Shown: positions 1-62,046, counted from the first letter of the stretch. The stretch is 62,046 nt of DNA from Gnetum montanum (GCA_015680685.1 MNCI01003167.1:2498-64543), one strand, 5' to 3'. Notes: a model not told the origin generated them from the letters alone. Translations and numbers: made by a program.

Positions 1-1788
1 AGTATTTTCAAAGAAGAAAGAAGATCATATCGATCATCTTTAGCAAGTTTTCGACAATTTCCGTGACTTTGGTATTTCATTAAATCCTAAGAAGTGTATC
101 TTCGGGGTTAAATCTGGAAGTCTATTACGCCATGTGATATGTCAAGAAGGGATTGCCATAGACAATTCTTGAATTCAAGTAGTACAAAATATTGAGCACC
201 CCTCTAGTAAGAAATCTATTAGATCATTCTTTGGGAAGATAAAATTTGTGAAGAAGTTCATCCCCGGGTTTATTGAAATTACCAAGCCTTTGATGCATAT
301 GCTTAAAAAGGACGTCCAAATAGAGAAAACACCAGAGTCAGAGAAAGCGTTATTAGAAATCAAAAAGGCTATACAAGAGGCTCCATATTTGGTAAATCCT
401 AGACTTAAAGAAGATTTTTGGTTATACTCTTTTGCTTCAAATGATTCTATTGCTGCCGTTGTTACACAAAAGGATAGTGAAGGTCAAGATGAACCAATTG
501 GATTCTTTGGGTATCAAATGAAAGGTTCAGAGTTAAATTACTCAGACTTAGAGAAGCAAGCTTTTGCAGTCATCAAGGCACTTCAACATTTTAAATATTA
601 TTTGGAGAGTTCATTAGTACACATTATGCTAATTGAACCTGCAGTCAAGCGGTTTCTATCCCAAAATAAGATTGGATTGAAAAGAGGAAAATGGCTTATA
701 AAGTTGCAAAGTTTTAGATTTTCATTAGAAATATGTAAGAAAATTAAGGGAATGGGACTAGCCAAGTTAATGACTAAAGAAAGTGAAGTTTACACACTTG
801 ACACCCATGAAGAGAATTGGTAATGATAATATTCTCAAATTTCTTACTACAAGGAAAATCCTAAATAATTTAACTGCAAGTCAAAAAAGAGCTTTCTTCA
901 AGAGAGTACGAAGATTTGTTGTTAAAGATGGTATAATATATTAAAAGGATTTTCGGGGAGTTCTATTGGAATGTGTTCATAATGATCAAAATAGTTTCAT
1001 TTTGGAATAATTCCATGATCATTTGAATTTATTTTATGAATCCCCTAAGTCAACTATGCAACATATACTTCGATATGGATATTACTGGCCTTCCATGTAT
1101 CAAGACATTAGTTCGAAGATTCAAAAATGCTATAAATGTCAAGTTCATGTGTCCAAGATTAAAAGGGCTAGAGCCCCTTTAAAACCAGTAGTTGCGGATA
1201 GACCATTTCAGCAATGGGGTTTGGATTTTATTGGTACNNNNNNNNNNNNNNNNNNNNNNNNNNNNNNNNNNNNNNNNNNNNNNNNNNNNNNNNNNNNNNN
1301 NNNNNNNNNNNNNNNNNNNNNNNNNNNNNNNNNNNNNNNNNNNNNNNNNNNNNNNNNNNNNNNNNNNNNNNNNNNNNNNNNNNNNNNNNNNNNNNNNNNN
1401 NNNNNNNNNNNNNNNNNNNNNNNNNNNNNNNNNNNNNNNNNNNNNNNNNNNNNNNNNNNNNNNNNNNNNNNNNGATAAAGATAGAAGTTTCATGACTTTA
1501 CTTATTAAAAGGGAAGCTGAAGTAGATAAAGCAAGGGATAATTTGTTACAGAATACCTCTCAAGTTAAAAGATGGTTTGATAGGAAATCTTTGAGAAGAA
1601 CTTTCAAGATAGGAGACCTTGTCCTGTTATGGAATATGAAGAAACCAAATAAGTTTACATCAACATGGATTGGTCCCTTTCAAATTTCAAAGAAATTATT
1701 AGAGGATACCTACAAATTAGCAACCTTGGATAGCATGGAATTACAGTTTCCATATAATATTTTGCATATAAAACATTATTTGGGATAA
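1..1788 (+). pseudogene. pol: Ty3/gypsy pol 3' part (RT C-terminus, RNase H, integrase) of element Z; interrupted by stops and an N gap
   Basis: LNPKKCIFGV (RT); NYSDLEKQAFAVIKALQHFKYYL (RNase H); GYYWPSMYQD...CYKCQ and PFQQWGLDFIG (integrase); FKIGDLVLL...WIGPF (GPY/F tail). RH runs directly into IN with no aRH domain. Confidence 0.95.
1238..1473. other. Assembly gap (N run) inside integrase
   Basis: Run of Ns. Confidence 1.
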
Positions 1789-2857: not shown

Positions 2858-5781
2858 TGTTGGCACATTTTCAGCCACTACATGGAGCAGGAGTTTCAAT
2901 TTACTTAAGAAGAATAAAAATGAAATGGGTGCTGGAATTCGGATAAGTTTCATGGAGATAAAACACATATTTAATTTAACCCTACATTAGGCAAAGAATG
3001 TAATATCTCAGCATATTACATTTAACCAAACTTAGACTGGTTCAGTAACGGTGGTAGACATAGAACATACAGGGCCTGGTCACATAAATATATCAAGCAT
3101 GAAATGATGTTGGTCCTGCTTTTACAGAAGCCAAGAACAGGGAAAATGGGTTCTGTGTTAAGAAGAAACAGTTACTGAATACTTGCAGAAACAGGGTTAA
3201 ACACAAAAAAGAAAAACGCAGTATCAATGGCAACAAAAACGCAGTGATGCTTGCTGCTAAAATTTACTAAGAAAATGCCAGAAATCACTCCATATTCTAT
3301 TTGGAATTTTGCCAAACACTTGCCACGGAGGGTTTCTTTGTTCTGTTTCCGCAGTAAGCTTAATTTCCTGGCCAAAGACTACAGAAAATGAATGAAGCAG
3401 GGTCAGAACGCAGCCGGTTGCTACGCCTACGCCTTTGCCTGCAACTCCGGACAGTTCCGAGCAAAAACTGCAAAACAAAAATACGAATGCGCCGGACTTG
3501 GACGCTGTCCACGAATAGGGGCAAGACACCATTGCCGAGGGTTCACAAATTCAAGTCATTTCACCATTAATATAACTGATACCGAGCTCTGCGAAAAAGC
3601 TGTTCCAACTGCAATCGTGTTTGTGGAGAGTTCAATAGATGACACACAGCCATGGCAGACGCGGAAGACATGGAGATGGCGGCAGCAAAGCAGCTGTAGT
3701 GTTTCGGTGACGTCAGCAACAAACCAACGGCAGCAATGACGACCTTTGGGCCAATCCGATGCAGAGCGGTGGCAGAGAAATAACGGACGGAGCAGTTCGA
3801 TGGAGAAGCAACACAAATCGCGGGAGGGAGCTGCGCACAGAAGGATCATCAAGCAATTCGGTTAACCGCGTTAGAAAACCTTACATTTGAAATATATTTA
3901 TTCTCCCATAAAGCTAACGTATTTGCTATCCCGTGAAGTGTTTTTTTTTAAAAAATGAAATGATGATGAATGAAACGTAGCCTCAAGGATAATTATTGAA
4001 TATAAATGTTGATATTTACCTACATATTTAAATTATATTAAAAAAAAACCAAAATCTTGAGGATATGTATGATGTAAACACTTATCAGTTGTAGATTTTA
4101 ATTGTTGTAACTTTCTCCTAGCTTGTTGAGAAATTTATCTTTTAATTGGTTAGTCAGGTTACTTGAGAGAAAAGTTAGGGGAGATATTTTTGGAGATACT
4201 TTTGAATATTTGGAAATTGCAACTTCCCTATATATCATTTAGAAGACTTAATATCTCATTTGGAAGAAGCAAAATCAAAGCGATAAATATGTATGGAGTA
4301 CTATAGCTTGTATTCATATATATATTTTTTGAGATTGCCAAGGCCACTTGTCAACTACCTTATCTCTTTTGTGGTGGCAACCACCCAAGATATTTTGTAA
4401 CTTAGCTAACTTGTTGGGCAAGTAACCGGTCAAGTTACTTGGGAGAGAAGTTAGGTAAGATATTTTAAAATTTGTAACTTCCCTACCTACCTTGGAATCC
4501 TATAAAAGGGCTTCAAGAGGGAAGGAAGGGAGAAATTGGAAGGACTTATCACATCACACTTGGGGTCTCATACATCACATTTTGAAGGCTACTAGTTAGC
4601 ACTTGGGCTCTTGGAAACACTTTGAGTCTTGGGAGAATAGCATTTGTAAAGCAGAAAGTGTGAACGATTGCTTGCAAGATGGCTCGCTAGAATAAAGATT
4701 TCAGCCTCTTTGTCATGGTCCTGTGAGTTATGCATTTCATTTTTTGTTTTGTTTAAATTGCTTAGCTAGTGGTTTAGATAGTATCATCCTTGGCAAGTAA
4801 TTTTGGGATTTTTAGATTGCTCTTATTGTTCTTGTTGCCCGATAGAAATTTCTGTTAAAATTTTGCCATAGAAGCGCTAGTGAATAAAAGCCTTAAGAGC
4901 ATTTTAGTAGTAAATTTCGTTATTGTGCAACGTTTGGGAACTGCTATTGGGTTGTTGGAAGAGAGCCTCTGTTTGTAGTCACGCCGTGGAACAATTTAGT
5001 AGTCGAGAGGGTTCAGAAAATCTTTGGTATTTTGATGGGACCAGAATAGCTTCTTTATCTTTAAAGTGATTTTCCGTGTTATTTCAATCAGAAATTGTCA
5101 AGTCTTTTAAAGGTTCTGTTTGAATGCAATCGTTGGCATCTATTGTCTAGTCAAAGTGGAGTCTCGTACGTGGTAGTTTACGCAGCGATTTTTGGTAGCA
5201 CAGTAGGATTGTCTTCAAGATATTGCTTGGTTGAGCCTTGGGATTTTGAACAATTCGTAGATATTGAATTTGGAATAGCTTTATTGTGAAGTGTTTACTC
5301 GTGTCATTTTACCTTGTTTAAATATTTGAGGTTCACACAAATCTGCTTTCTTTTCTTTTTGTCTATTTCCATTGAATCTTGCTCTATTTCTAGTTTTCTT
5401 ATGGAACTACCTCTCTCTCTGGGGAAAATTAGGAGTAGATTTGCGGAGTTGTGCTCAAATGTTTTTGCAAAATTTTACTTGTTACAAGGAGGTATTATAA
5501 GGACCGTGTAGACTAGGCAGTTGAACAAAACAGGAAACTTTCAACAATTCACAGTACTTGACAAAGTTGGCTGAATCTCTTAAAGTAAGTAATTTGTATT
5601 TTACACACACGTAATCGTTACATTTCTCACAACCGCACGCCGCAACAGCACACACACATACTCACATTAACTACTGAGTTATTTGGAGGTATCTGGGCCT
5701 TGGTGTTGCCAAAGACCAGCAGGCACCTAAATCCTATTCGAGGACACTCGTTGGCGGTCGCGTCCCAAACGGTCACCAACA
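2858..5781 (+). repeat. 3' LTR of element Z (~2.9 kb)
   Basis: Starts TGTTGG after the PPT and ends CCAACA (6-bp terminal inverted repeat); TATAAAA near 4501; homologous to 60189-62046. The right end is inferred from the TIR and a change in sequence character. Confidence 0.8.
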
Positions 5782-11279: not shown

Positions 11280-12848
11280 TGAAACAACACCAAAATTTCA
11301 TGTTGCAAACTATAACCTTCATTTCCCAACGTGAGACAAGCTTTCATTGTAAATGTAAGATTTGTAGTCCATGAGCTACAATCTTGCATACTTTAGCTTT
11401 TGGGGATGCAAATGTCTCAAAAGTTTTTATTGCCTCACTTTCCAAGGGAAAAAAGGTATCTCATGTCTATATTTCGGCTTAGGAAGGCTGAAAATGCCTT
11501 AGGAATAACCAAAAATAGCATTTTCATGGGATTTTATAGGGGTATAGCCTCTAGTGTACATGGAATTGATGGGATTTTCCATTTCCAATGTAGCATAGCC
11601 ATCATAAAACCCAATGAAGATGTAGTATTGAAACTATTTGGATTTTTCATTTTGGAATTGGTAGAATTTTCCATTTTAGAATTGGCAAAATTTTCCATTT
11701 TGAAATTGGTGTTACTTTCAAATTTCATTTTCATTTCTAGTTTTTCAATAGTGAATAGCATAGTCACCCCAATTCTTCAATAATTAAAACATGACTAGCA
11801 TAGATAACATTTTCTAGTGGTTTCGTCAATTTTACCTGTTTCAACATTTTTCTTAAATTCTAGCATTTTCTATACTTTCCATGTTTTCCACATTTTCCAT
11901 ATATTCCAAAATTTCCCAACAACTTTAGTGTAGTCTACCAAGAACAACGTAGTTGGGATGGTGTTAGCATAGTCACAAAAGTACATTTACTATTTATTGT
12001 AAATGGATGGATGCTAGTAACTACAGTGTATTCCAAAATTTCTATAAATGTTAACTATGCTAAAATGTGTAACCCTTACCAACTGCCAATTGACATTAGT
12101 CTATTAGTAATCAAGATAGTGATGTGTAGGCCCTAAAATAAGCAATTTCATCCCTATAAAAATCCAAGATAAACATCTTATTTCATTCTACAACCTTGAC
12201 AGAAAACATCAATAGCATTTGGCATTTTTGTAACCCAAAGAACCTTATGACCTTACAACCTCTTTTAGCAACATAATCTGGTAACTATGCTTGGCATAAT
12301 GAATTTCATGTAATACCATTACACCAAAGATGGAACACTCATTTATGGCCTTATTACTAATTCTAATGGAAACCAGTGTAGAGTTGCTAGAAATTAGAGT
12401 TGGAAAGCATCTGAATTGTGGAGTTCCAAGTGTAGGCCATAAGCTCCAAAAGACTTCAAACTCCTTGAAGAAAATTCTTGTGCACTTAACAGAAAATCTA
12501 TACTTCTTAAACATGTTACTTTATTTTCAAATTTTAATAAAACTATAGTTCATTTATTCTATAGATTTGAGTTTCATCTTTCTATTTCTATGTCTTTTTC
12601 CATTCTAGATCTACAGTTTCATTTACATTTTCATTTTCATTTTCATTTACATTTATGTTTATGTGGCCTTTTTACACTTTTGTAAGTCCTTATGTGATTA
12701 GCCACATCATCCAAGGTGCCTTAGATCTCATTTTCAAAGGCACTTGGGATCCAAAGCTAAANCGTGATTAGCCACATCATCCAAGGTGCCTTAGATCTCA
12801 TTTTCAAAGGCACTTGGGATCCAAAGCTAAAACTATTTTGACATTAGG
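11280..12848 (+). repeat. 3' LTR of element A (interrupted by element L; may resume at ~18355-18406)
   Basis: PPT AAAGAGGGATCAA then TGAAACA, like B's junction. Homologous in reverse complement to ~52620-52856 and ~44160-44900. TATA at ~12155. Confidence 0.75.
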
Positions 12849-13418
12849 TGTCACATCCCCATTTCCAAATGATGTTGCCTAATGAAGATGTTGTCTCTTC
12901 ATAACAAGTGTTATTATCATCTTAACAAGACCCAAAAGGGTAGTTGTGATTAAGACCCAAAAGGATGCATTGTAATAATGGACATGTCTCTTAAGGTAAC
13001 CTTTGGTGGTTTGACCTAAGGCATTTATACCTTGGGTTAGAGGTCATGCTAGCATGAAGTGGTAAAACCAATGTAGGCAAGTCATGGAAAGTTGGGTGAA
13101 GTGGAATAGAAAGTGGATTGGCCATCCCTTTCAGCTAGGTTATAGGCCTAACTATGGTGGTAGTGTTAGATTGCCTCTAAGAAATAGATGCCAAAGGAAA
13201 AGAACCTCAATGAACACTCATAGCACGATCTAGATACACTATTCCATATCAATAAAGAATTCTTTTCTTCCTCTTTCTACATTTTTTCTATTATTTTCTT
13301 TATACATAATGTCAAATATCACATATATTTTGCATATGGTATATTTTATTCATATGCATAATGTCTAATAAATTGTACATTTGATGTTTTCCATGATATC
13401 TAGGGATGGGATGCCACA
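12849..13418 (+). repeat. 5' LTR of element L
   Basis: TG...CA ends with inverted termini TGTCACATCCC/GGGATGCCACA; aligns with 17832 onward. Confidence 0.9.
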
Positions 13419-13420
13419 AT

Positions 13421-13432
13421 TAGTATTAGAGC
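13421..13432 (+). promoter_or_regulatory. Primer-binding site (tRNA-iMet type), degenerate
   Basis: TAGTATTAGAGC vs canonical TGGTATCAGAGC, 2 nt after the LTR end. Confidence 0.8.
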
Positions 13433-15431
13433 AAACCATGACCCAAGGGTCATTCAGGACCATGGGCCAACTACAACATGAACCTAGAAGCCACAACACA
13501 TGGAAATCTATTCATCATCAATAGATGTACCATATGCCTATAATGTATGTTAGAAGATACCTTTCCATTGATTTCATAAACAAAGGATTAGGCATCTATA
13601 TCTTAGCAACCAAAAAAATTATTTCATGGATATCATTAACTAACCAAGATTTGATCACACCTCATCAAGATTCATCAATTATAAGAGATGTTGGTAAGAC
13701 AATGATACACTAGTCCAAGTAACTCTTACCCATCTTAATACTATAAATAGTAATTGATTAAGATCATTGTTAAGTTTCTCCTAAAACGTTAGTAACCATG
13801 ACTTGAATTGATTTTTGGTTTTGTTGAAATTCACTATTCAAGTAATCTAGAAGATTTCAAGTTACCATAGGCCAGCCTAGAAATGTAAATTCAATAAAAT
13901 AGGCTACTTTGGTCCTTTTAATTTCTAAAAAATTAACTTTAATTTTTAAACCTAAAAGCATGTCCAATACATAGTTCTTTTCGACATAATTTCAATAGAA
14001 CAAGTTTTCTTTCAATAGAACTTATGGTTTGAGAGATATTGGTATTTAAAGTTTTTTGTTATACATGTATTCAAATATATATATGTGTGTATATTATTAT
14101 TTAAATAAAAAAATTAAGTAGGAGCATGTATGTTCAAACCTCAACCCCCTCACTTTTTAAAAATAAATAAAAAAATAAAAAAATAAAAAAAAATTTACAG
14201 ATCATGCAGCCTTGGAAGGACCGCAATGGCCCTATAGGGGTTGCGCTAGCCCTACAAGTGCCATGTAGGGCTGTGCTATGCTCAGCAAAAAAAAACCCCA
14301 CCTTTGCCTCTAGCTAACCACACCATTATTTTCACAACTACTACCACCTCTAGGGTTGCTAATCCATAGCTATTTCCACTTGTGCTTGCACCTATGGCAT
14401 GCTCTTTTACTAATCCACAACCAGTGCCACCTACACGTACCACCACTCTCCTATCATGCTATTTCCTACTATAGAACTATCCTACAACTACCATTCCTAA
14501 AACCTGCACCATTTCCCTACCTACCATTTTCATCACAAAATCCTCATCATATTCTTTTCATAGCCATCATTGACTACGTCATTGTTACCCATCGATGTTG
14601 TAGATCACTGCCTCCCATATCATCAAAAATTACCTTCCACACTACCACAAGCCACCTTTTGTGCCATTGAAAACTACCTCTCATGCCACCATAAACAACC
14701 TAATGTGCTACCAAAAACTACCTTTTCCATCGTCATAAGTTACCTCCCTCAGCACTAGAAATTGCCTCCTACACCGTAGATAATGACCTCATTTTGGGGC
14801 TATGCTAGACTTGTTTGGGGCCATGCAAACCATGTGGAGGGATGTGTGCACCCCAAGGAGGACCACACAAGCCATAGAGAGGTTGCATAGTCCTCAAGAA
14901 CGGTTGCACGAGCTCAAAAAAGTGCCATGTAGGCCCAAAAAAAGGGCAACGTAGGCCCTAGAAAAGGGTCATGGGAGCCTAATAATGTGCCATGCAAGCC
15001 TAATAATAGGCTGTGTAGGAACTAAATAATTATACACAATCCTAAGTATGGGGCATTAAAGCCCTAAAATGGGGCTGCATAGGCCTAGGGCACACCACCC
15101 AACATAATCCCTTTTTCACCAATTTCACCATCGTCACCATTGATGCACACCTTCATTTTCCACATTGCTTGTCTTATCTATGTTCTTTGCCCTGCTACCA
15201 TCCACTACTTAGAAATGTGGTAGCCACCAAGGCCACTACTAGCATGCCACTATGGCCATTGTTTCCATTGACACAAAAATGGCAAATTTTGCATCACCTA
15301 ATGAAAAAATTGAAATTTTCATTAATTGATGGAAAATTTAAAATTCTATCATCAAATGTTTAATTTAAATTAAAATTGTGCAAAAATGGTTTTCAAAATT
15401 TGAATTTCACACATCTGTAACAATAGAGACA

Positions 15432-15510
15432 AAAATTCCACAATTAAGCATGCTCACCCTACAGTAGAACTAGAATGGGTGACCTTTCGGGAAGTCTCAT
15501 GTTTCATGCC
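15432..15510 (+). pseudogene. 5S rRNA-derived segment (3' two-thirds, boxes A-IE-C, Pol III type 1 internal promoter)
   Basis: AAAATTCCACAATTAAGCATGCT...AGTAGAACTAGAATGGGTGACCTTTCGGGAAGTCTCATGTT is collinear with plant 5S AGAACTCCGCAGTTAAGCGTGCT...AGTAGTACTAGGATGGGTGACCTCCTGGGAAGTCCTCGTGTT. Confidence 0.85.
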
Positions 15511-16294
15511 AAAGGTGCTAGACACTAGAAACCATAACTTTTGATTTTGGAAGCATTTTTTGGCAAATTAAGAGTCATTTCCTATAGTTTTTGACCTTTT
15601 GGACACAATGGTAAAGTCATATCCATCCCAGGAAATGTGAAAAATTAGATTTTACTCCTTGCCTAATATAGTGCCTCAACATCCTTAAAAGTTTAATTTT
15701 TACATAACTCAAGCATATAATATTCATCTTCAACATATGAATAGTAATTTTCAACATTTTCCACCATTTTAAACTCAATGGTGAGGTTATATTTATTGAC
15801 TAAGCACCCAATAATTTGATGATATTATAAATTTAACCTTTTAGGCTTTAAGATTTAGTGCATAACCCTTATAGATAGTCGTAAGATCACTATGGCATGT
15901 CAGTAATTACACTACAGAAGTCAATGTTCTTAAGAGGGGTAGAAAAGGTCATTAAGAATTATATAATATACTTACATATTACTAAAATTATTTGATGTTA
16001 TTCAATATTATTGAAATTTGATAATGTAGTTAAATTAGTTGGAGAATTAGTTGTTGTATCAATATTAGTTGATTATTATTTAATGAATTAGTCAATGTAT
16101 TAGTTTAAGATCAGTTGATGTATTAGTTTGAGAATTAGTTGAGGAAACATAACAATCTTCAACCATCAAGAAAAGGGTATGTTAATCAATCCTACAATCA
16201 AAAAATAGGGCAAAACAACATGGAGACTCCAAATCTCATTTCGAGAAGAAGTATGATACTCATGAATAGAAATGATACAAACAAGAATCCAAGA

Positions 16295-17368
16295 ATGAAA
16301 ATAAAAGTTGCAACATACAAAATGCTAGTAGGATCCCTAGTGAGTGAGAAAAAATATCCGCTATGTCCATCATGGGCCTTAGATTAGCATGAATATTAAT
16401 ATCCACACATTTTAGCAAAATTACAAGATTTTGATGTTGATGTCTTATGCTTACAAGAAGTCTTGCCATGATAATTTCTATACCAATTCCAAACAAACAT
16501 GGAAAATATGGGATGTAGAGGTATTTACAAGCAAAAAGGTTCCTATGAGAGTTCTTCTTTTAAGCCATATAGATTAGCATGTTGTAGAAATCACAATATG
16601 GATGATTGTGCAATCTTTTGTAAAGAAGCGAAGTATAAATTGGTATAAATATTTGAATGAATTTTAGAAAATATGATTTTTGAAATTCCAAAACTTTAAG
16701 CAATGAAAAGAAAAGATTAGTCAAGATTTTGGAAAAATCACATAGCCTTGGCATTTATTTTAAAAATTTAGTTATTAAGAAGTGTATGCATATTTTGTTT
16801 CCCAACCAATATGTTTAGATGTTGGACTATGTCAAGGAGCATATTTGATTAAGAAAATACAAGAAAGTTTCACAAATAAGTTATTACTAAGTTATACTAA
16901 TTTAGCTCCATTTATTCTTTGTGGAGACTTCAATGAAAAATTTGGAAGTAGTGTTTATCAATTCTTAAAATATGGATCTATAAAGAAATCTTTGCAAGAT
17001 GAACCTGACTTGAAGAATATTTTTTCATCAACTTAGCATTTAATTCCATTAACTAGTGCATATTTTGCTTACTTTGAATTTTTAGTAGATAAATTAGACT
17101 CTATAATTCAAGAACAAATGATGTTGATGGATAACACTCATCAAGAACCACAATTTACCGATTACTCTATTATGATTAATAAGGATGGATCAACAACATT
17201 CTTCATTGAGACTTCGGATTATATTTGGTACAATGTTTAATTCTTTGAAGTTACCAAGTTACTAGAGTTGATTTCTAAAAATGAATTTTAGAAGAATCAA
17301 GATCATGACCATCCCAAGCAAGACCATCTGATCACCTACCACTTATGATAGAATTACAATTACTCTGA
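16295..17368 (+). pseudogene. CCR4: Intronless CCR4-family (EEP) deadenylase nuclease domain, decayed
   Basis: Motifs in correct order: KVATYKML...YPLCPSWAL; DFDVDVLCLQEV; GIYKQK; DDCAIF; DVGLCQ; PFILCGDFN; IPLTSAY; EPQFTDY; FIETSDYIWY; PSDHLPLMIEL-stop. Several stops and frameshifts. Confidence 0.9.
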
Positions 17369-17831
17369 TCAATTCATAAGGTTGATTAAGATCAAGAAGT
17401 ATCTCACTCTTACTTTTATTTGATGATCTTATTATTTTATTCATTGTTTATTTTATATTTCAATTAAATAAGTAAAATATCTATGATAATAGAAATTGGG
17501 GATAAATAATTTTCCCTACCTTTACTTAGGTAACTAGATCTAACTTGCACTTTGTGTGACCCTAGTTAGGACTGCTGATTAGTGGTTGATAAATCTTTAA
17601 TTCACCTTTTGTCATTATCTTAGAAAATGAAGTAAGTATCAAGAAATTAATATTTAATTTTACATATAATTTTACAATATCTTTTTTTGTAGAATAAGTA
17701 AGAAATAACATCAATTTTAAAGGAGAAATCAAATTATTAAAGCAAAATATCATGAAAGAAAGCATTGTAGATTTAAAAAGATAGATGACGTGGACTAATT
17801 CAAGAACAAATGAAATACAAGGTGGGTATAT

Positions 17832-18354
17832 TGTCACATTCCCATTCCCAAATGATATTTTTGTTGAATGAAGATGGTGTCTCTTCATAACAATTATTAT
17901 TATCATCTTAACAAGACCCAAAAGGGTAGTTGTGATAAGACTCAAAAGGGTGCATTGTAATAATGGACATGTCTTGTAAGGTAACCTTGGGGGTTTGATC
18001 TAATGGATTTATACATTGGGTTAGAGTGTTTACTAGCATGGAATGGTGAAACTAGTACAGGAAAGTCATAAGAAGTTAGGTGAGGTGGGACAGGAAGTGA
18101 ACTAGTCATCCCTCCTCACTGGGTTATAGGCCTAACTATGATGGCAATGTTGGATTGCCTCTAAGGGATAGATGCCAAAGGAAGAAAACCTCAATAAAAA
18201 CTCTTAGAGCATGATCCAAATACGTTATCCATATCAATAAAGCATTCTTTTCTTTATCTTTCTACATTTTTCCTATTATTTCCTTTATACATAATGTTGA
18301 ATATCACATATATTTTGCATTTGGTATATCTTCTAATATATCATATATTTGACA
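17832..18354 (+). repeat. 3' LTR of element L (right end eroded)
   Basis: Starts TGTCACATTCCC after AAGGTGGGTATAT; collinear with the 5' LTR to ~18335. Confidence 0.85.
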
Positions 18355-20631
18355 TTTGAGGATGGTATTTCATACTTGGAATATTTTAGTTTTCATTCTA
18401 GCAATCAAAATTTCTAGGTCCAACACTATTGAAATTGGAATATTGTATCAATACCTCATGACTATGCTAGCCAACATAGTTGAAGCTTGTCTTAGCATAG
18501 TTAGATCAAAACCTATGCTTTTCATGGTTGAAACAAGTCAAAATGCAATTAGCTTTAGGGTTTAATTTTTCTAGCTCTATCATCAATCCTTTTGATTATT
18601 TTGAGTGCTACTTTGATGATCAAGCACCTTGGAACATGGACTACACTAAGACTACATTGACCAACATAGTAATAAGCCTACCTCAACATGGTCACATGAA
18701 ATCTAATCTTTCCATGATCAAGACAAGGTAAAATCACAACTATGTAGTGTCAATTAGGGTTTTCAAATGTAAACACATCAATTTCATGAATTCTCAATCA
18801 TGACTATTTTGGGAGTACATTGTCTAACATAGTCATGGCCTTACTCAAGGTAGTCATGTGCAAAATCTAGCTTTTGGTGGATTTCTATGGCCAATTGACA
18901 TGTTTCTTAAGTTCTCAAGGTTATCGATTCTTCTAGCTAGGGTCCTAACTGAAGATGGATGATTTTAAAGGCCATTAAGGCTTTGAAATAATCATATCCT
19001 AATTTGACTATGTTGGCTAGCATAGTTTAGCCTAAACTTAGCATAGTCAGGATGGATCTAGTGTTTTCATCATCAAAAAAAAGTGAATTTGCAATTTGAT
19101 AAGGCTATACAAGGTCATGGATTTTCAAGTTAGGTTTTGGACTATTTTGATTGTCAAATCACCATTTGAATGAACCTTCAACCATGACTTGACTGAGACT
19201 TTGCTAGCTAGCATAGTTCAAGCTTAATCTATTATATTCATAATATGGAATTTAAATTTTGATATAATCCTATGATAGATTGACTATGTTTTCAAGTTCT
19301 AAGGCCACTGATGTCAAAAAATATGGTTTTAGGCATACAATTGTTAGTTTTGATAGTCAATTTGATGTCATAATGGTCAAACACCACTAGACTATGTTGG
19401 CCAGCATGGTCACAATGTGGATGTGGCATGTATGATGAGTATTGACTATTTCTAACTAAGATTGTAGGGTTTATAGATCTTTGAAGTCTGTGGTAGTGTG
19501 TTGGGGCTAGCCTAGTGTTTTTAGAAGGAAATTTAACAAGTTGGAATCCTAGTTTGGTGTTTTGGAAGTGTGACTATGTTGGGACTACATTAGCTAGTGT
19601 AGTCATAAGCTTCCTCAAAATAGCCACATAATGAAAATGGAATTTGGCTTCTTTCTACTTTGCAGTTTATCAATGCATGATTACCTAAGGTCCTAGAGTG
19701 AAGTTAATGTCAAAATGTGTCAATTTGAAAACCATTTTAGATCTTTAATGTTTATTTATTTTCCAACTACTAGTTACTACACTAGCTAATGTAGTTGAGA
19801 CTTGGCTTTAGCATATGCATGCAAAACAAAATTGAATTTTGATAAATTTTAACATGTTTCATGTAATTCTAGAGCTATCAGATCTCCTAGCTAGGGTTTG
19901 ATATATGAAGCTATCATTCTAGAGTTAACTGGCATCTTGGTTAATATTTGGAAACCTCTTCCTACTAGTGACTATGCTAGCTAGTGTAGTCAGGTTGCTT
20001 GTTAGCATAGTTGCCAAAATTAATAGGTTTTGGAATGCGTTGTTGCCTATGTCTTTGTTCATTTTCCATCAATGTTAACACTTGGTTTTCCATTGTGGGC
20101 ATAGGGGTTTATGGCATGGATGGACAATTGGAAGGTTGGTTTTAGAAATAATTATGATTTTGAAATTCACTTAAAGGCTTCTGGATAATTCAAACCTAGC
20201 ATAGTCACCCTAGGAAACTTGAAATCCAAGTGTATTAGGATTTCCATTAGCATTCTTCCTATGCATCTAGTGTGGCCTATCTTAAATTTAAATTTTTTGA
20301 TGCATCAGGTTCCCACTCACCCAGCATAGTCACACTTATGAATTTTGATCATTAAGTTCAATGACACTTGGAAGAGTGTTTTGAAAAACTAGGGTTTTCT
20401 AGGGAGGTGCATAAGTTTGGAAGTGTGTTTCAGAAAATAATTTTACACAAATCATTCTTTTATTACCACTCTCAAGTTCTAGTGCCTTAGATCAGAGCTT
20501 TTCACCTACTCTAGCACCTGCAACCCTCATCCTCAGTGTAGTTGAGCTTTTTCTACCTAAGAGGCTAGTGTAGTTACTTCAAAAGGCTCAAGAATTCCAA
20601 AACATCAAACTCTTTTACATTGGTTGCTACT

Positions 20632-23250
20632 ATGTTTAAGAGGAGAGCTACCATCAACAACAAGAATCCTACTTTAGAGGAGGCTAATGCTACTACCTAG
20701 ATCCTCTTTAATCTTTCATGCCCTATTATTATTAGGAGCTCTGACACCATGACTCCCAGGTACACAAGTTCTAACTCTTTTAAATGGAATTTTCCTTTGG
20801 AACCCAGGTGTTTTTGGTTGTAGTGTTGTGTGTGTTTGTTATTTTTTAATTCTTAAAAATATTGCTAATATCTAGGCTATTTCTATGGGTTTCTGGTATT
20901 TCTTGGATTGTTGGATTGGTGTTTGTTGAATGGAAAATTTATTTTTGTTGCTTTTGGGCACTTTGATGTGTTTTGGTTTAAAAAAGCAACATCAATTTTG
21001 GATTTTTTTTCTATTCAAATAGTTCATATTTTTTAGTTTTTATGACATAGGATTGTAGTATTATGTTTAATAATTGAGTATACCTTTGAACTATCTCATG
21101 CTAACTTAAAGTTAATTCATTATAAACTTTTCCATAAAGCAATGTATAGTGGGTTTTCAGTTTTGGCCATTTTTTACATGACAATTTCATGTTGTTTCAC
21201 TTCAAAAAAATCAAGAATTTTTTGGTTTTCTTGTTGTGGTTCGTATTTTATTGTTTAAGAATTTTGATGACTATAGATTCCTCAAATTTGGATGTATAGT
21301 TAAGTCTTGGTAACTTGTTTCCTAAGCTTGTGCAAAATGGGGATTTGCTATCATGGCCAAGTTTATATCAATTTGGCAATGTTTTTTGCAAAAACATATA
21401 AGAATGTTTATGGTTTCTAGTTTTAGGTGGTTAGCTTATGGTTTAACAATGACCATGAAATTAGTGAATTTGGTTATGTGGTTTATTTTTAATGAATTTT
21501 TTAGTCACCTACTCAAAGTGTAATCTTTTGGTTGCTATGTTTTACCCCTATGAAGAAGGGTAATGTTGGTACCCTAGAAAATTTTCCCATCTAATGTCCC
21601 ATTAGCTTGAGGCTACTATAAGGTGTTAGGAATGGTTTGGAAGTTGTTTTAGCCAACTTAATAGATTTTTACTTTTTTTTATGGATTGTCTAATCTGGCT
21701 ATTTTCCACAGTTTTGGTTTTGTTGTGAAGTTTACGATGGCATGTTGTTATGCTATTGGTTGGTGTTTTAAGTTTTTTTCTAATCTTGAAACCCCATCAT
21801 AGTAAGCCAGTTTTATTAAATTCTTATGCTCACATAATTTCTAGAATTAGAAAAAATTTTAGTTGTAATCTATCATTTTCATTTCGGTGTGAATTGTTCT
21901 ATACAGTTGCAATTTTGACCATGAAAATTGCAAACCTTGTTCTCTATACATGCCACATTGATGTTGATGTTGGTGTTGATTTATATGCTTAAAGGTTCAT
22001 GAAGTTGTTTATACATTATTTTTTAGTTGTAAATAGTCATTTTGAATTTTAGCAAATTTTAACTAGGCCTCCTAACATTTTTACTATGGCTAATTTCACC
22101 ATTAACTATGATGCTTAGTAAAATTGTGCAAACTTCAAGTTGGTTTTTGGATTGTTGTAGTTGGTACAAGATAGTTCTCATGCCTTTGATTTTTTACATA
22201 AGAAGCTTTTATACTTTTATGCATATCTTAGCATGAAAACTACCATCAGTCATTATTAGGCCACTTGGTTGTACATGGTATTTTAGGTGAAAGTATAAGT
22301 GTTGAAACTATGGTTTGGTTGTTTGGAATGGAATGGTAATGTTGACATTGATATTATAGATATTTTTGGCTATTTAAAGTTTTTTTGTATTTCTTTATTA
22401 CTGTTAATGATTGTAATGGTTATTATTGTGTGTGTAGGATCTTCCTAAAGACCATGCTACAGCTAATAGAGCTAGTGGGATTACTATGTTGCATCCATAC
22501 CTTGGGACCTAACACTCCACCTCCCATATAAGTTTGAAGTATGGCTCTTTATGGTTTAGGCCTAGGGCACGAGAGTTCTTTGCATTCCTACTATAGAACT
22601 TTAGCATGATGATATGGTCATACTTGTCAACCCACATAGCTATTGTTATTGTTGAGAGCTTATTACCTTAATTGTCTAGCTTAATCATCAAGTTTATAGA
22701 AGACAATCTTGAGACACATGTAGAGGGAAAGGTTGTTGATAGTACTCATAGAAGAAGAACTCGTAAGCTATCCAAGATTTTGGACATCCTGGAATTCAAC
22801 TTGTACAACACTAACCACAACTTACTACTTGGAAATTAGGCTCACATAATGTTCCAAAACCATCCTAATATTATTTACCATGTGGAAGGGTAAGCATGAT
22901 TTCAAGTTTTTATTTTTGTCTACTTTAGTTATTGGTTTTGCTAGGCTATTTGGTTTTATCACTTTCTTGCTTGGATTAGTGCACTTGCAGTATAGGGTGG
23001 ATGACAAGGGGTACATCAAGTAGGACGAGCTCCTACCCTTAGCCTAAAAAACATTTAAGGTTTTCACCAAGAGTGCCATGGTGAGGCTTGTGATGGTGGA
23101 ACAACTAAGAGGTGACCTAGGAAGATACATCACATAGTACTTCAAAGCCTACCAACATTGTGTAGCCAATGGCATAGCACATGGTTGGTGGAATAAATCA
23201 AATTTGGCCTGCATACCCATTGAAGGCTCCTTGTCACCCTCTAGTAATAA
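20632..23250 (+). pseudogene. Possible relic spliced gene, perhaps the antisense accessory gene of minus-strand element C
   Basis: Exon-like blocks separated by T-rich spacers, with donor CAG|GT (~20761/20807), acceptor TGTAG| (22437), donor GG|GTAAGC (22890) and acceptor TTGCAG| (22990). No intact ORF. Confidence 0.35.
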
Positions 23251-27389: not shown

Positions 27390-30300
27390 TCAGATGTTGT
27401 ACGACTTGAGATATGAGTGATTCACCAGATTTTCAAACTTGTTGCTATCCATGTCTACCAGCTTGAAGGCCCCGTTTCCAAAGGCTTTTATGACCATGTA
27501 TGGACCTTCCAGGTTTACTGAGAATTTGTTCATATGCTCACAGATAGCCTTGAGAATGAGGTCTCCCTTTTGTATTGTCCATTGATGAAAATTTTCATGA
27601 TGTTTCTATCACTGCTTGTTTTCATAATGCTCTATGCAACCTAGTGTCTGTGCATGCTCCTCCTCTATTGAGTCAAGGTCGATGATCCTTGACTCGTTGT
27701 TCTAAGCTTCGCTCACAACATTCGATAGGATCATCCAGAGTGATGGCACCTACAACTCAAGAGGTAACACCGCTTCAGATCCATAAACAATACTATAAGG
27801 TGTCTTACCTGTTGTAGTCCTGGATGTCATCCTGTAAACCCATAGTACATAGAGGATTTGCTCATGCAATCGCCTCTGTCTATTGTGAAGAATTTTCTTC
27901 AACAAGTTGATGATGGACTTATTTGTAGCCTCTGCTTGTTCATTCACTTGTAGGTAATATGCCAAGGAGAATGATTGTTTGATGCCAAGTTTGCTGGAAA
28001 AGGTTCGAGTTTCTGCATTACTAAACTATGGTCCATTGTTGGTCACAATAGTCATGGGGAGCCCAAACCTTGTCATGTTGTTTTCCAAGATGAAGTGAAA
28101 AATCTGTTGAGATATAGTCTCCCTCAGGGGGATAGCCTCTACACACTTAGTAAAATACTCAGTGGCAGTGATGATGAGGTTATGCCCTATAGAAGACTTA
28201 CGCGTGATAGGTCCTATGATGTCTAGTCCCCATAGATTGAAAGGCCACGTGATCTATGTCAGATGTAATTCTGTAGGTGAAACATGTATGATATTTGCAT
28301 ATCTTTGGCACGTATCGCAAGTCTTGAATTTGGCTAGACAATCACGCTCCATGTGAGGCCAATAGTACCCTAAGCGTATGATTTTTGCAACCACGGCTCT
28401 ACATGCTATTTTTCCACCACATAGTCCCTCGTGTACTTCATTAATCACCTTCTGCGCTTGCTCCTCATTTACGCATGCTAGCAATATCTCATCATAGGAG
28501 CATTTACATAGGGCATTGCCTCCCATAATCACATATTTTTGAGCACGCTTATGGATTGTATCTTTCTGGGCAGATGTCAATCCGCTTGGGGATTCGCCAT
28601 GTTGCAGGTAGGTTTTAATATTGGTGTACCACTCCTGGGTGTCCGTAGCACTAACAGATGGTACGTGTACCACCTAAGTGATAGGCTTTGTACACTCAGT
28701 AATCAAAGCTGGAAATTTTTTGAATAGATGTGATGACATGTTTAATGCTAGGGTGACCAAGGAATCTGCTACGGTGTTTTCATTGCACGACACATGTTGT
28801 ACGTCCTTTGTTACAAACTATTTCAGTAGGCTTTTCGCTAAGTCTCAATAGGGCTATAGGTGTATAGCATTTCAGGTGTAGACCTTGGTGATTTTATTCA
28901 CAACTAGTTGTGAATCTCCGTGAATCACCAAGTGTTGTATGCTTAATGCTTGGGATGCTAAGAGGCCCCTGAGCAACCATTCGTACTCTACCACATTGTT
29001 TATACAAGGAAACAAAAAATGATAAGTAAAAGGTTACATTTACCTAGAGGGGAATGTAATGACAGCAGTTACACTATCCTCTCATGTGGTTGAGGTGCCG
29101 TCGAAATGCAAATTAGCTTCAAGATGTGACTGGATGACATTGATAGTGCTAACATGCTAATATGGGAATTCAAGATCTATGATCGCCTCGTCATTGATGG
29201 GTGAAGTCGTAAGTTACGTTGCTATAGCATAACCTTTCATCAATGATTGACTCACATAATGCAAATCAAATTTTGTTGTTATTGCTTTCCACTGGGCTAT
29301 CCTACCACTTTCATATAGGTTTTTTGTGATAGCCCAGAGTATATTACTCTTGCAAATAATGTTAATCTTGCTATGAAATAGGTAGTGTCTCCACTTCTTC
29401 AATGCAAACACTAAGACAAGATAATTTCTCTTCACCTCATTGTATTTCACCTCATACACTATTAGTGCATGACTTAGGTAGTACACTAGTATCTCAAAAC
29501 CATCATTCTATTTCTGACATAACAGTGCTGCGATAGATATGTCTAAGGTGGCAAGGTTGATGAAGAAAGGCTTATCCCTCTATGGTGGGTAGAAAGTTGG
29601 GAGATGGAAAAGCTCTTTCTTTAGATCATCAAAATCTTCTTGGCATTGTGTTTTCTATTCAAAGTTAATCCCTTTCTTTAGTAGATGTTGCATGGGGTGT
29701 AACTTGTCAATCAACTTTGCTATAAACCTTTTGATGAACTATACTCTAGCTTGTAACCTGCACAATTCCTTAAGATTTGTAGCTGGTGCCAGGTTAACAA
29801 TGGCCATGACTTTGTCAAGGTCCACTCATATTCTAGCCTCCAATACTACAAACCCTAACATGCATCTGGTTCTTACCCTAAAGACACACTTTTTTAGATT
29901 AAGGTGTAAATTGTGCATCTTGCAATGCTTGAGGACTACACCTAGATCATTGGGATGATCAGTGGCTTCTTTAGATTTCACCACTATGTCATCCACATAA
30001 TTGTTGAGCATTTCTAAGATGTAGTCGCTAAAGATGTAAGTCATGACTTGCTGGTAGGTTGCTCCAACATTCTTGAGCCCAAAAGGCATCATAGTGTAGC
30101 AAAAGGTAGCCCATGGGGTCATGAAGGCTGTTGTTAACTGATGCTCTAGGTTGATGCAAATTTGGTTATAGCTGGAGAAACCATCCATAAAGGATAATAG
30201 AGCATAACCAGCCGTAGTTTCAATGAGTTGATTGATACTCAGAAGTGGAAAATTTTCTTTGATCATTGCCTTGTTCAAATCCCAGAAGTCTATACAGATT

Positions 30301-30871
30301 TGTATTCCTCCCATTTTCTTAGAAACTAAAATGATGTTAGATATCCATTGTGAGTAATCAACTACCTAGATGAAACCAGCTTGATATAGCTTGGTGATTT
30401 CATCCCATACGACCAGTGCGATCTCTAGTTTAACCTTGTGAGCCTTTTGCTTAAATGCTTTCATGCATGAGTCTAAGATGATATTGTGCTATATCAGGCT
30501 TGAATATAAACCTAGAATGTCACTGTATGACCATGCAAAGACTTCAATTTTATCTTGCAGAATTTTGGCTACATCTTTGTGCATCTGTGAATCTAGGAGG
30601 GTACTAAGTTTCAACATTTTTATCTCTCCCCTAAATGTGGTCATAGGAATTTCGATGAGAGGGTCCTTAGGTACATCCCCAACCTCTAAACCTAGTGCTT
30701 GGACCAGATGCTCAGGCCAATTTGAGGATGCTTCTAAGGATGCTACGGTGCTAACTATGGGTGATTCCTAGTCTATTAGCTCTGGTTTCAGTTGTCTTGC
30801 AAGTTCACTGTGTCGACCTATTAAAGCTAAAGGTGAAGAGAGATCATGATGGATTTTCATTCTTACTCAAC
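27390..30871 (-). pseudogene. pol: Element B RT-RH-aRH-IN, degenerate
   Basis: CIDFWDLNKA, FMDGFSSYNQI, MPFGLKN, NYVDDIVVKS; YYLSHAL...KKWRHYL; aRH FDGTS/NNVVEYE; HEGLCGG...GYYWP...CDTCQ; TPYSIVYGSEAVLPLE. Confidence 0.95.
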
Positions 30872-58258: not shown

Positions 58259-60188
58259 ACTTTACTCTTAAAATGTAAACCACAAACTTAAGAGTATTGA
58301 GCTCTAATACCACTTGTGGATTGAGAAGTTAGAAGGGGGATTGAATAAGTTCCCCATTTAAATTCTCTATAGCCACAAAATCAAACTCAACTTTTACATG
58401 ATTCCCAAACTTTGGTAGTTTACACTTAGAGGGTAGATTCCTTGCATACCTTGTTACTTTGTTGCTTCAAAAAATGTGATTTTCAAGGCACCATAACATA
58501 TATAATATTTGAGCTTCACTATGTAGAGATTCATCACTACAAAACCTCTCAACTCCACTAGGTCTCAATAAGCTCAAAATGTGGTTTAAAGAATCCCATA
58601 ACCTTTAAAAATGTGAGCTCCACTTTGGAGTGTGTTGTCCTCACAAAACCACTTAACCCCATAAGGTCCTAACGTGCTTAACAAAGATGTCTTCCCACAA
58701 GAAGCACATCAACCCCATAGGGCTACAAGAAAGAAAGAAAAAATTTACAATGTCCTTGTAGTGAGGCTCACAACATAAACAACATACAAATGATGAATCA
58801 ATGAAGAATAACCACACAAATCACTTAAGTATCCTTGGGTAAATTTTATTATGAATAGTACTTGAATAATTTCCAAAACTTTTACTTTGTCTTATAGCCT
58901 TGGAGTTTTCAAAAACTCCTCGAAATTTATTCAAAAACTATCAAATGACTAGTATATTTATCTACTTTGAAGTTTATATGTCTCACTGAGAATTCCCTTA
59001 ATGTAGGAGAGACATCTACAAGAAAGTGTAGATGTCTACCTATAGACATGTATAGATAGACATCTATTATTAGAGGTAGACATCTATTTTTTTTCCAAAT
59101 GTCAACTTTTTATAAGCACTTTGAAATATGAGGTATTTCTTTGATCCTTGGGCTTCTCGACAATCTTCAAAACATCTTTATTTGGCTTGTAGATCTTGTT
59201 TCCATTAATGCTCTCATCTAGTTCACTTAGTCTTTGTTTTGACATCTCATCGCGGATCTTGTTTCTAAAATATTAGATCTCCATGTGAAGTTCTTATTCA
59301 TGGTCTTGCAAAATTATCATTACACACAAAAAATCTGCATTCTTCATTTTCTTTATGGTTTTGACATATGAAAAGGTCAACAATTGCTACTATAGTATTA
59401 TGGATGCAATATTATTTAGCTTTACCTAATGCAACTTCCTAGTATTATGAATAAAATATTATTTAACATTGTAGGATGCAACCCCTAGAGTGTTATAAAC
59501 AAAATATTATTTAGTTTTATCGATCTATGATTGGTAATTGGTCTCTTAGTGAAAATTAGCCAAAATAAGTTTTGTGAAAAGAAAAATATCTAAATATGAA
59601 AAATAAAATATCTAGAAAGGTCAAAAGAAAAAGTGTTCATAAGTAAAAGAAAAAATACATAATAAAATTGTGTAACTCACATTATATTAAAGAATCAATT
59701 TAAAAAGAACTAATTACACTCTTTCTATTTCCATAAAGGATTCTAAAACTGGTAATTATTAGTACATCAAATTTAACACAATCACTATTGAAATCATCAA
59801 CTAATTTATAATAAGTTGAATAAAAATAAAAATTTAATTTTAAATGTTTATAACAACCACACGATGATTTAACATTGACTTACAATCATTATAACCAAAA
59901 CATGATATATCATTTACTAATTAATTAATAATGATTATAATAAATTGAAATTTAGTTGCAATCAATATGTGAAAAAAGAAAAGACCTTAGAAACATTGAT
60001 AACAATCTCGCTTACTAAGTGAGCCATGTGGTATTCCTACTCCATGACATGTACTTATTTTGGCTGAGAAGCCAACTACCTATCATAAATTGGTAATGCT
60101 AAATAATATTTTGTTCATAATGCTATACGGACAGCTTATTAGTAATGCTAAATAATATTCCATCCATAACACTAAAGGGAGAACTTAT

Positions 60189-62046
60189 TGTTGGCACATT
60201 TTCAGCCACTACATGCAGCAGGAGTTTCAGTTTGCTTAAGAAGAATAAAAATGAAATAGGTGTTTAAGATTCGGATGAGTTTTATGATGATAAACACATA
60301 TTTGATTTTTACCTTACATTGGGCAAAGAATGTGATATTTCAGCACATTACAAACTTAGATTGGCTCAGTAATGGTGGCAGATAGGGAATATACAGGGCC
60401 TGACCACAAATATATCAAGGATAAATAATATTCAAAAATGATGTGGTTCTTTTGGTAAACCAAGGATTTTCAAGAATGATAAAATTTTTCTGAATTATGA
60501 AAGCGAAAGAACAAAGGAAATGAACTCTGTGTTGAGAAGAAACAGTTACTGAATACTATCAGAAACAGGATTAAACACCAAGAGAAAAAATGTAGTATCA
60601 ATGGCAATAAAAACGTAGTGATGCTTGCTGCTAAAATGTTTCCAAGAAAATGCCAAAAATCCCTTCATATTCCACTTAAAATTTTGTCAAACACTTGCCG
60701 CGAAGGGTTTCTTTATTCTGTTTCTGCAATGAACTTAATCTCCTGGCCAAAGAGTACAGCGGATGAATGAAACAGGGTCAGAACGCAGCCGGTTGCTACG
60801 CCCACGCCTATGCCTGCAATCCGGGACGGTTACCAGCAAAAAACTACCAAATAAAATACGGATGTGCCAGACTTGGACGCTGCCCACGAATAGGGGCAAG
60901 ACACCATTGTAGGGGGTTCTCAAATTCAAGTTATTGCACCGTTGATATGAGTAACTGATGCCGAGCTCCGCGAAAAAGCTGTTCAAACTGCAATCGTGTT
61001 TTGGGGTTCAATAGATGACACAGCCATGGCAGACGCGGGAGACGCGGGGATGGCGGCAGCAAAGCAGCGGCAGGGTTTCGGCGACGTCAGCCACAAACCG
61101 ACAGCGGCAATCGTGACCTTGGGCCAATCCGACGCAGAGCGGTGGCAGGGAAAATAACGGACGGAGCAGTCCGGAGGAGGAAGCAACGCAAATCGCGGAA
61201 GGAAGGAGCGCGCACAGAGGAAGCAAAGTAACGCGGTTAACCGCGTTGGAAAACATTGACACTTGAAAAATATTTACCCTCCCCCAAAGATAGCGTATTT
61301 ACTGTTTCATAAAGTTAATTTTACAAATAATTATATTTCTAACAAATGAAACATAGCCGCAAAAATAATTATTGAAATGCTGGATACTTACCTAGGTATT
61401 TAAATTATATGCAAAGGCCAAATTCTTGTATCATGTATGATGTAAACACTTGTCAGTTGCAGATTTTCTCTTCATAACTATGTAACTTTCTCCTAGCTTG
61501 TTGGGAAAGTAATCTTCTAATTGGTTAGTCAGGTTACTTGAGAGGAAAGTTAGGAGAGATGTTATTGAAGATATTTTTGGATATTTGAAAATTGCAACTT
61601 CCTTATACATCATTCAGAAGACTTGACATCTCATTTGGAAGAAGTAAAATCAAAGGGATAAATATGTATGGAGTACTATAGCTTGTATCCCTATGTATTT
61701 TGTTTAGATTGTACTTTAATAACCAAGGCCACTTGTCAACTTCCTCATCTCTTTTTGTGGCTAAAAACCACCCAAAATTGTTGTAACTTACCTAACTTGT
61801 TGGGCAAGTAACCACCTAACTTGTTGGGTAAGTAATTTTCTAATTGGTTGGCTAAGTGACTTGGGAGAGAAGTTAGGTGAGATATTTTTAAATTTGTAAC
61901 TTCCCTACCTACCTTTGAACCCTATCAAAGGAAGAAGGGGGGGGGGGAAGCATAAAAAAGGGAACAACAAGGAACTTCACACATCACACTTGGAAGATTT
62001 GTAAAGAAGATTTCTTGGAAGATGGCTTGCTAGAATAAAGATTTCA
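60189..62046 (+). repeat. Second LTR of family Z (solo or 5' LTR; runs off the window)
   Basis: Starts TGTTGGCACATTTTCAGCC and is collinear with 2858-~4703; inserted after CTTAT in a short ~49-bp tandem repeat (~60090-60188). Confidence 0.9.

Follow-up and report, generated by a model that had tools for sequence, protein, structure and literature searches.

A decayed, pol-less LTR retrotransposon copy from Gnetum montanum with a CCR4/ANGEL-family nuclease domain and a 5S rRNA-derived fragment in its interior

A 62,046-nucleotide stretch of Gnetum montanum DNA (GCA_015680685.1, MNCI01003167.1:2498-64543), referred to here as the window and counted from its first letter, harbors an element that is bounded by two long terminal repeats (LTRs) and carries in its interior a sequence related to the CCR4 family of nucleases, together with a sequence resembling 5S ribosomal RNA (rRNA). 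The locus raises the question of how two such sequences came to lie between one pair of LTRs, and whether they have served the element as functional modules. A preliminary description of this DNA had proposed a functional deadenylase as cargo, along with a 5S-derived promoter for RNA polymerase III (Pol III) in the place of gag/pol. The reading favored here, to which a probability of roughly 0.6 is assigned, is that of a decayed, non-autonomous LTR copy of the large retrotransposon derivative (LARD) type, in which RNAs of the host were taken up as passive cargo via template switching.

The boundaries of the element and its signals for reverse transcription are as follows.

12849–13418, + strand: 5′ LTR, 570 bp, TG...CA, starting with TGTCAC and ending with GCCACA (MAFFT alignment)
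13421–13432, + strand: decayed initiator-Met-type primer-binding site (PBS), TAGTATTAGAGC, 10/12 match, 2 nt past the end of the 5′ LTR
17806–17831, + strand: polypurine-tract-like stretch, 26 nt, 69% purine, adjoining the 3′ LTR, with no long unbroken tract
17832–18374, + strand: 3′ LTR, ∼543 bp, TG...TA, starting with TGTCAC and ending with TTTCATA, with 17- and 12-nt deletions near its end

Both LTRs point the same way, and the stretches 12849–13347 and 17832–18332 showed 84.2% identity over 505 bp (E = 4e-152). The paired LTRs of ∼570 bp reported earlier are thus borne out as direct repeats that are 84% alike, although the 3′ copy is the shorter of the two. The terminus of the 3′ LTR, TG...TA, is one C-to-T transition away from TG...CA. 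The end of the element had previously been placed at 18354; the alignment puts the end of the 3′ LTR at 18374, ∼20 nt further, so that the element extends over 12849–18374 (5,526 bp) with an interior of 4.4 kb. The PBS sequence TAGTATTAGAGC differs by two transitions from TGGTATCAGAGC, which we take to be the canonical plant initiator-Met PBS 12-mer. Matches of this grade are expected ∼4.4 times in the whole window, counting both strands, and the chance of one falling at the right place and on the right strand is ∼2e-4, in agreement with the initiator-Met PBS claimed in the preliminary description. The polypurine tract (PPT) claimed alongside it stands with regard to its placement, which is correct, directly before the 3′ LTR; as a signal, it is weak, being only 69% purine.

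No gag or pol was recognized between the LTRs. Pfam gave no match in ten open interior pieces of at least 45 amino acids outside the CCR4-like frames, and tblastn with 127 reverse transcriptase (RT), RNase H, and integrase queries, which included the window's own pol fragments, gave no match in the interior. The earlier statement that no gag/pol can be recognized is upheld by both searches, and the grouping of the element as a pol-less LTR retrotransposon is supported.

The larger of the two host-like sequences in the interior is the nuclease domain.

∼16244–17366, + strand: CCR4/ANGEL-family endonuclease/exonuclease/phosphatase (EEP) nuclease domain, pseudogenized, with the motifs CPSWAL, LCLQEV, CGDFN, and SDH legible

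The region 16139–16384 (+) aligned to residues 177–221 of CNOT6, with a common CPSWAL at its end. It is followed by 16400–16468 (+), the sole match of which was ANGEL2 86–106 via DVLCLQEV (E = 0.005) and which also matched positions 22–39 of PF03372. Further downstream, 16779–17033 (+) matched ANGEL2 226–254 via CGDFN (E = 0.006), then PDE12 and yeast CCR4, as well as PF03372 positions 139–167, and PSDHLPL is next downstream in a shifted frame. The PF03372 scores of the pieces were 16.0 and 14.5 bits, all below the curated cut-off of 24.5, and solved-structure searches with the pieces 16475–16645 and 17037–17237 gave no CCR4-family match. Though each match is weak, the identification as CCR4-type holds because the order, strand, and spacing of the four pieces agree. 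The motifs CPSWAL, LCLQEV, CGDFN, and SDH are collinear with those of the CCR4/ANGEL/nocturnin/PDE12 clade (PF03372), and the sense-oriented CCR4 nuclease domain noted earlier was hence recovered as collinear + strand matches to CNOT6, ANGEL2, PDE12, and yeast CCR4. The best solved relatives are ANGEL2, which is the closest, and CNOT6, and the term deadenylase, as used in the preliminary description, goes beyond the data; its assignment to the CCR4 family of nucleases is retained. Plant CCR4-family members include non-deadenylases, e.g., an NADP(H) phosphatase (PMC12557515).

The spacing of the motifs bears on the origin of the domain. From LCLQEV to CGDFN, 165 codons are present here versus 140 residues in ANGEL2, and the whole nuclease domain, from the equivalent of CNOT6-177 to SDH, comprises ∼364 codons. 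As the codon spacing is near that of the solved relatives, the domain is contiguous, with no room for ordinary introns. Such an intron-free domain points to a copy that was probably derived from RNA.

The second host-like sequence lies upstream of the nuclease domain and is followed by a cluster of T-runs.

15441–15510, + strand: 5′-truncated 5S rRNA-derived fragment, about 5S positions 50–120 (box A, internal element, and box C region)
15539–15561, + strand: Pol III terminator-like runs T4, T4, and T6, just downstream of the 5S fragment

A 17-mer that we take to represent the plant 5S box C region was found once in the window, at 15469–15485, with one mismatch and 0 occurrences expected by chance. 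Unlike a 5S rRNA gene, the fragment aligned to Rfam RF00001 over positions 55–120 only (15446–15510), with 10.4 bits (E = 7.5) against a gathering score of 38, and this alignment appeared only if the searched stretch started at the fragment. No 5S was reported by ordinary Rfam scans, whether run on the window or on a 241-nt stretch surrounding the fragment. By eye, the similarity to 5S can be followed for some more bases in the 5′ direction, up to about position 45–50. The stretch 15441–15510 is hence a 5′-truncated, structure-broken 5S derivative that is visible at the level of primary sequence only, and it is at this level, through the box C 17-mer, that the 5S rRNA-like segment described earlier in the interior was found again. 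No 5S match was obtained inside either LTR at E up to 10.

The proposal that this segment acts as a Pol III promoter instead of gag/pol is not supported, as the fragment is single, internal, ∼2 kb from the 5′ LTR, and followed by T4 and T6 runs. With an internal 5S-type promoter, the transcript starts ∼50 nt upstream of box A. A Pol III transcript from the 5S piece would be devoid of R, U5, and the PBS, because its start would be ∼2 kb downstream of the 5′ LTR, and it could not be copied by the replication route of LTR elements. The T4 run begins 29 nt and the T6 run 46 nt past the fragment, and as many as 24 runs of at least four T are present between the fragment and the end of the nuclease domain. 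Owing to the T-runs that follow the 5S piece, Pol III would be unable to express the nuclease cargo.

For the 5S piece, the most fitting role is that of a further passenger, which would have come either straight from the abundant 5S rRNA or from a nested insertion of the Cassandra or SINE type. The latter origin, in which the fragment is a nested Cassandra-type terminal-repeat retrotransposon in miniature (TRIM), present as a solo LTR, or the remnant of a 5S-derived short interspersed element (SINE), and formerly had its own Pol III promoter, is possible though doubtful. Of the 5S, only the promoter-bearing part has been retained, from box A through the 3′ terminus, and T-runs then follow, as in Cassandra, Ajax, and SINE3 (PMC10886601), but no second repeat, target-site duplication (TSD), or TG...CA borders are visible around the fragment.

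Whether the nuclease could be functional was judged from the state of its frame. Unlike an intact enzyme of the CCR4/ANGEL/nocturnin/PDE12 clade, the copy is stop-riddled, frameshifted, and strongly AT-drifted. Over 313 codons, the best frame path is interrupted by 9 stops and by two or more frameshifts. In the Y-N-x-L motif, Lys stands in place of the Asn, the first metal-binding one, and the E of LQEV, the D and N of GDFN, and SDH are still legible. The inter-LTR Kimura two-parameter distance is 0.185, with 65 transitions and 21 transversions, which would place the insertion at ∼7 million years for a rate of 1.3e-8 substitutions/site/year, at ∼13 million years for 7e-9, and at ∼42 million years for 2.2e-9. 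The present sense codons were decayed in a simulation that used the per-lineage LTR rate of 0.0925/site and the transition share seen in the LTRs; 3.0 ± 1.7 new stops resulted, with P (9 or more) = 0.003, and the 9 stops observed are ∼3-fold the number expected. In view of this excess over the LTR clock, the frame was probably broken already in the source copy, and a frame broken before insertion would mean that the element moved without needing the protein. The GC content of the nuclease domain is 29%, and the CpG observed/expected ratio of the element is 0.16; low GC, CpG depletion, and the transition-heavy LTRs point to long methylated, neutral decay. The functional enzyme cargo proposed earlier is thus not supported for this copy, since the stops, the frameshifts, and the Asn-to-Lys change leave a domain that was dead probably before insertion. 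The cargo of this copy is inert: the nuclease frame is destroyed, and the 5S piece drives neither the cargo nor a replicable RNA.

Passive capture by a LARD-type element would account for this anatomy in the following steps. A seed-plant LTR element of LARD size (5.5 kb), equipped in cis for reverse transcription and integration but without gag/pol, would have had its copies moved in trans by an autonomous element. Host RNAs may have been co-packaged in the virus-like particle (VLP) of the progenitor, where reverse transcriptase could have switched template onto them. Two host-derived RNA copies in the sense orientation would have been gained in this manner, namely, about the 3′ 60% of 5S rRNA and the intron-free CCR4/ANGEL-family nuclease domain. 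The chimera would then have been amplified in trans, with its cargo as neutral ballast. Template switching is suggested as the origin by three points, namely, that the cargo lies in sense, that it lacks introns, and that LTR elements are known to behave in this manner. It is established that plant LTR elements transduce host genes in the sense orientation (PMC7264820), and template switching is a known route as well (PMC5131818).

Several points weigh against this reading, one of which concerns the sequences flanking the two LTRs.

12844–12848, no strand assigned: left flank, candidate TSD TTAGG, read from the sequence
18375–18379, no strand assigned: right flank, CTTGG, read from the sequence

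The flanks TTAGG and CTTGG agree at just 3/5 positions, and a TSD is not recognizable. The element is present as a single copy within the window, with no further match to either LTR or to the 4.4-kb interior in these 62 kb; amplification, trans-mobilization, and the unselected state of the cargo are inferred, along with the capture mechanism and family membership, next to an anatomy, a decay, and terminator runs that can be read in the copy itself. The stop excess shrinks if the rate is doubled (mean of 5.6 stops, P = 0.11), and the stop test lets present-day codons stand in for the ancestral ones, with LTRs and cargo taken to decay at the same rate. There is no A-run in 17367–17805, so that the captured mRNA end shows no poly(A) remnant. 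Finally, a complete nuclease domain and not a random fragment was captured, which could hint at a past function.

The distribution of the locus in sequence archives was also considered. Metagenome scans with LTR patterns gave no match. Sampled words of the locus were found at ∼0.5–0.56 in one organism and at 0.06–0.44 under six other species labels, all in DNA contigs, which would reflect either the locus itself or close copies present in relatives. No RNA dataset with the sampled words is on record in the run index.

A past function is taken up by the reading in which active masters carried functional cargo, the founder's intact CCR4-family nuclease domain having benefited the element, e.g., against host repression dependent on deadenylation, and the copy in the window being a dead descendant. 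This is considered unlikely. The catalytic domain is present as a whole and in sense, its LQEV, GDFN, and SDH motifs can still be read, and a motive would be supplied by the restriction of plant retrotransposons through host CCR4 deadenylation (bioRxiv 10.1101/2023.03.23.533991; PMC12501189). However, the stops are ∼3-fold over post-insertion decay, so that the source copy was probably broken, and the first conserved Asn is Lys. Moreover, among 5.8 billion sequences, a homologue search with the best nuclease piece revealed no similar predicted protein of the lengths covered. It is more improbable still that active masters used the captured domain of a CCR4-family nuclease, a class of enzyme that curbs transposition in Arabidopsis by deadenylating retrotransposon RNA, to blunt this control by the host, as protein or as decoy RNA, with the internal 5S as a second captured module.

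An objection of another kind is that the two LTRs do not belong to one element, i.e., that two solo or partial LTRs of one family bracket a piece of host DNA containing a processed pseudogene of CCR4 along with a 5S fragment, or that two copies recombined. The flanks, with a TSD that matches at 3/5 and is not recognizable, would fit such a history, and old LTR elements lie densely nested in the window, a setting in which such chimeras arise. It nevertheless appears improbable, as the PBS adjoins the 5′ LTR and the purine tract adjoins the 3′ LTR, both on the correct strand, and as the LTRs share one orientation and an identity of 84%, a value that no other LTR pair in the window reaches.

It is very unlikely that the element is a small-RNA source against the host CCR4 gene. 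Gene fragments captured by transposable elements can yield small interfering RNAs that cross-target the donor gene (bioRxiv 10.1101/777037), and this provides a precedent, but the domain is recognizable at the protein level only, with 29% GC, making 21–24-nt identity to the host gene unlikely now, and no RNA dataset with words of the locus is on record in the run index. Least probable of all is that the nuclease domain represents the APE-type endonuclease of a nested long interspersed nuclear element fragment, since, even though both types fall within PF03372 and the Pfam matches here are below threshold, the solved-structure matches are all of the CCR4 clade (ANGEL2, PDE12, yeast CCR4, and CNOT6) with no L1, TRAS, or APE1 among them, and no reverse transcriptase is present downstream of the domain.

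LARDs, such as barley LARD/Sukkula and rice Dasheng, are multi-copy families with anonymous, non-coding interiors. The features shared with these families are the LTR pair, the PBS, a PPT-like stretch, an interior of several kb without gag/pol, and a presumed mobilization in trans; unlike theirs, the interior here holds a recognizable host nuclease domain and a 5S fragment. Several gene-transducing LTR elements have been described, for example, maize Bs1 and the LTR-captured genes of rice and sorghum (PMC7264820), as well as LTR-mediated retrocopies (PMC5131818). Similar to the present element, they hold intron-free, mRNA-derived host sequence in the sense orientation between LTRs, gained by template switching or read-through, but most of them are one-time or low-copy cases, and their cargo is different. 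Cassandra and Ajax ("TRIMp3") carry a 5S piece in both LTRs, have a terminally redundant Pol III transcript, and are <1 kb in size (PMC10886601; preprint 10.1101/2023.07.14.548913). They are comparable to the present element as non-autonomous LTR elements with a promoter-bearing 5S part. There is, however, a key deviation in the arrangement of the latter, with a single internal 5S copy, none in the LTRs, and a length of 5.5 kb, which places it outside TRIMp3.

The searchable literature yielded no paper on an LTR family with cargo of the CCR4 family or with the combination of 5S and CCR4, in agreement with the earlier remark that no described element with this combination is known. Gene capture by LTR elements and pol-less LTR families are well known, and the cargo of a CCR4-family domain plus an internal 5S would be the new part. 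If the family is abundant, it would provide a clean natural example of co-packaged VLP RNAs entering a mobile element, and it would inflate the counts of "CCR4-like" and "Exo_endo_phos" genes in annotation of the genome. As deadenylation by CCR4 has recently been recognized to act as a brake on plant retrotransposons, it would also offer a testable case, unlikely at present, in which a transposon carries part of the machinery that represses it. This copy alone is an ordinary dead element.

The remainder of the interior consists partly of tandem-repeat filler.

14300–15100, + strand: C-rich non-coding block of degenerate 22-nt tandem units, GC skew −0.20
16064–16142, + strand: 23-nt AT-rich tandem repeat, 3.4 copies, Tandem Repeats Finder (TRF) score 100, just upstream of the nuclease domain

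Inside the C-rich block, TRF arrays were found at 14670–14723 and 14916–14973. Pairing of these two 22-nt arrays as an inverted repeat or hairpin was considered and rejected, there being no reverse-strand match between them. Two stop-free stretches, of 118 codons (14314–14667, +) and 105 codons (15046–15360, +), gave no Pfam match; they are low in complexity and un-protein-like, and are due to base composition and not to coding. Exact look-up of the eight ATG open reading frames of the element in the protein collection found none.

A full HMMER scan of 1.84 billion representatives gave 5 weak matches only, and a protein-atlas look-up gave sub-threshold EEP clusters only, which are no more than a lead. 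Two of the five weak HMMER matches, KAG9458295.1 and KAG9458298.1 of Aristolochia fimbriata, were tried as close relatives of the nuclease domain and rejected, as their score stems from repetition and neither gave a tblastn alignment to the window. These gene models lie three loci apart and consist of partial EEP-domain segments repeated in tandem, which gives them the look of arrays of a nuclease-domain fragment that were mis-annotated.

Repeats were also observed on either side of the element. Directly upstream, at 12694–12831, two perfect 68-nt tandem copies are split by "NC" (the N at ∼12743); the pair could be an artifact of assembly or scaffolding, or else a duplication of very recent date. 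Shortly past the 3′ LTR, at 18460–19240, there are four units of 44 nt that show internal dyad symmetry and are spaced by 353, 193, and 191 nt; they look like a degenerate satellite or an array of ∼190 bp resembling miniature inverted-repeat transposable elements.

Nested old LTR elements also mark the window as a whole. Remnants of pol of the Ty3/gypsy type (RNase H, integrase, and RT) are present at 248–1788 (+) and 29829–30314 (−). Their relatives in databases show at best 50–57% identity for RT (Taxus, Camellia, and others) and 41% for RNase H, and this low identity indicates that the repeats of the genome are poorly represented in public protein sets. Initiator-Met-type PBS matches with one mismatch occur at 20738–20749 (−) and 58301–58312 (−), and these minus-strand matches probably belong to other LTR elements. 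Self-BLAST revealed a direct repeat pair at 2858–4509 and 60189–61931 (1.7 kb, 79% alike, 57 kb apart). Should the two copies be LTRs of a single element, that element would enclose almost all of the window, with the CCR4-bearing element nested in it. Old LTR-like direct repeat pairs that are 73–81% alike are located at 23639–24762/40963–42095, 46291–48046/51215–52549, and 52947–53918/58316–59384. As the other pairs are more diverged, the CCR4-bearing element is the youngest insertion of the nest.

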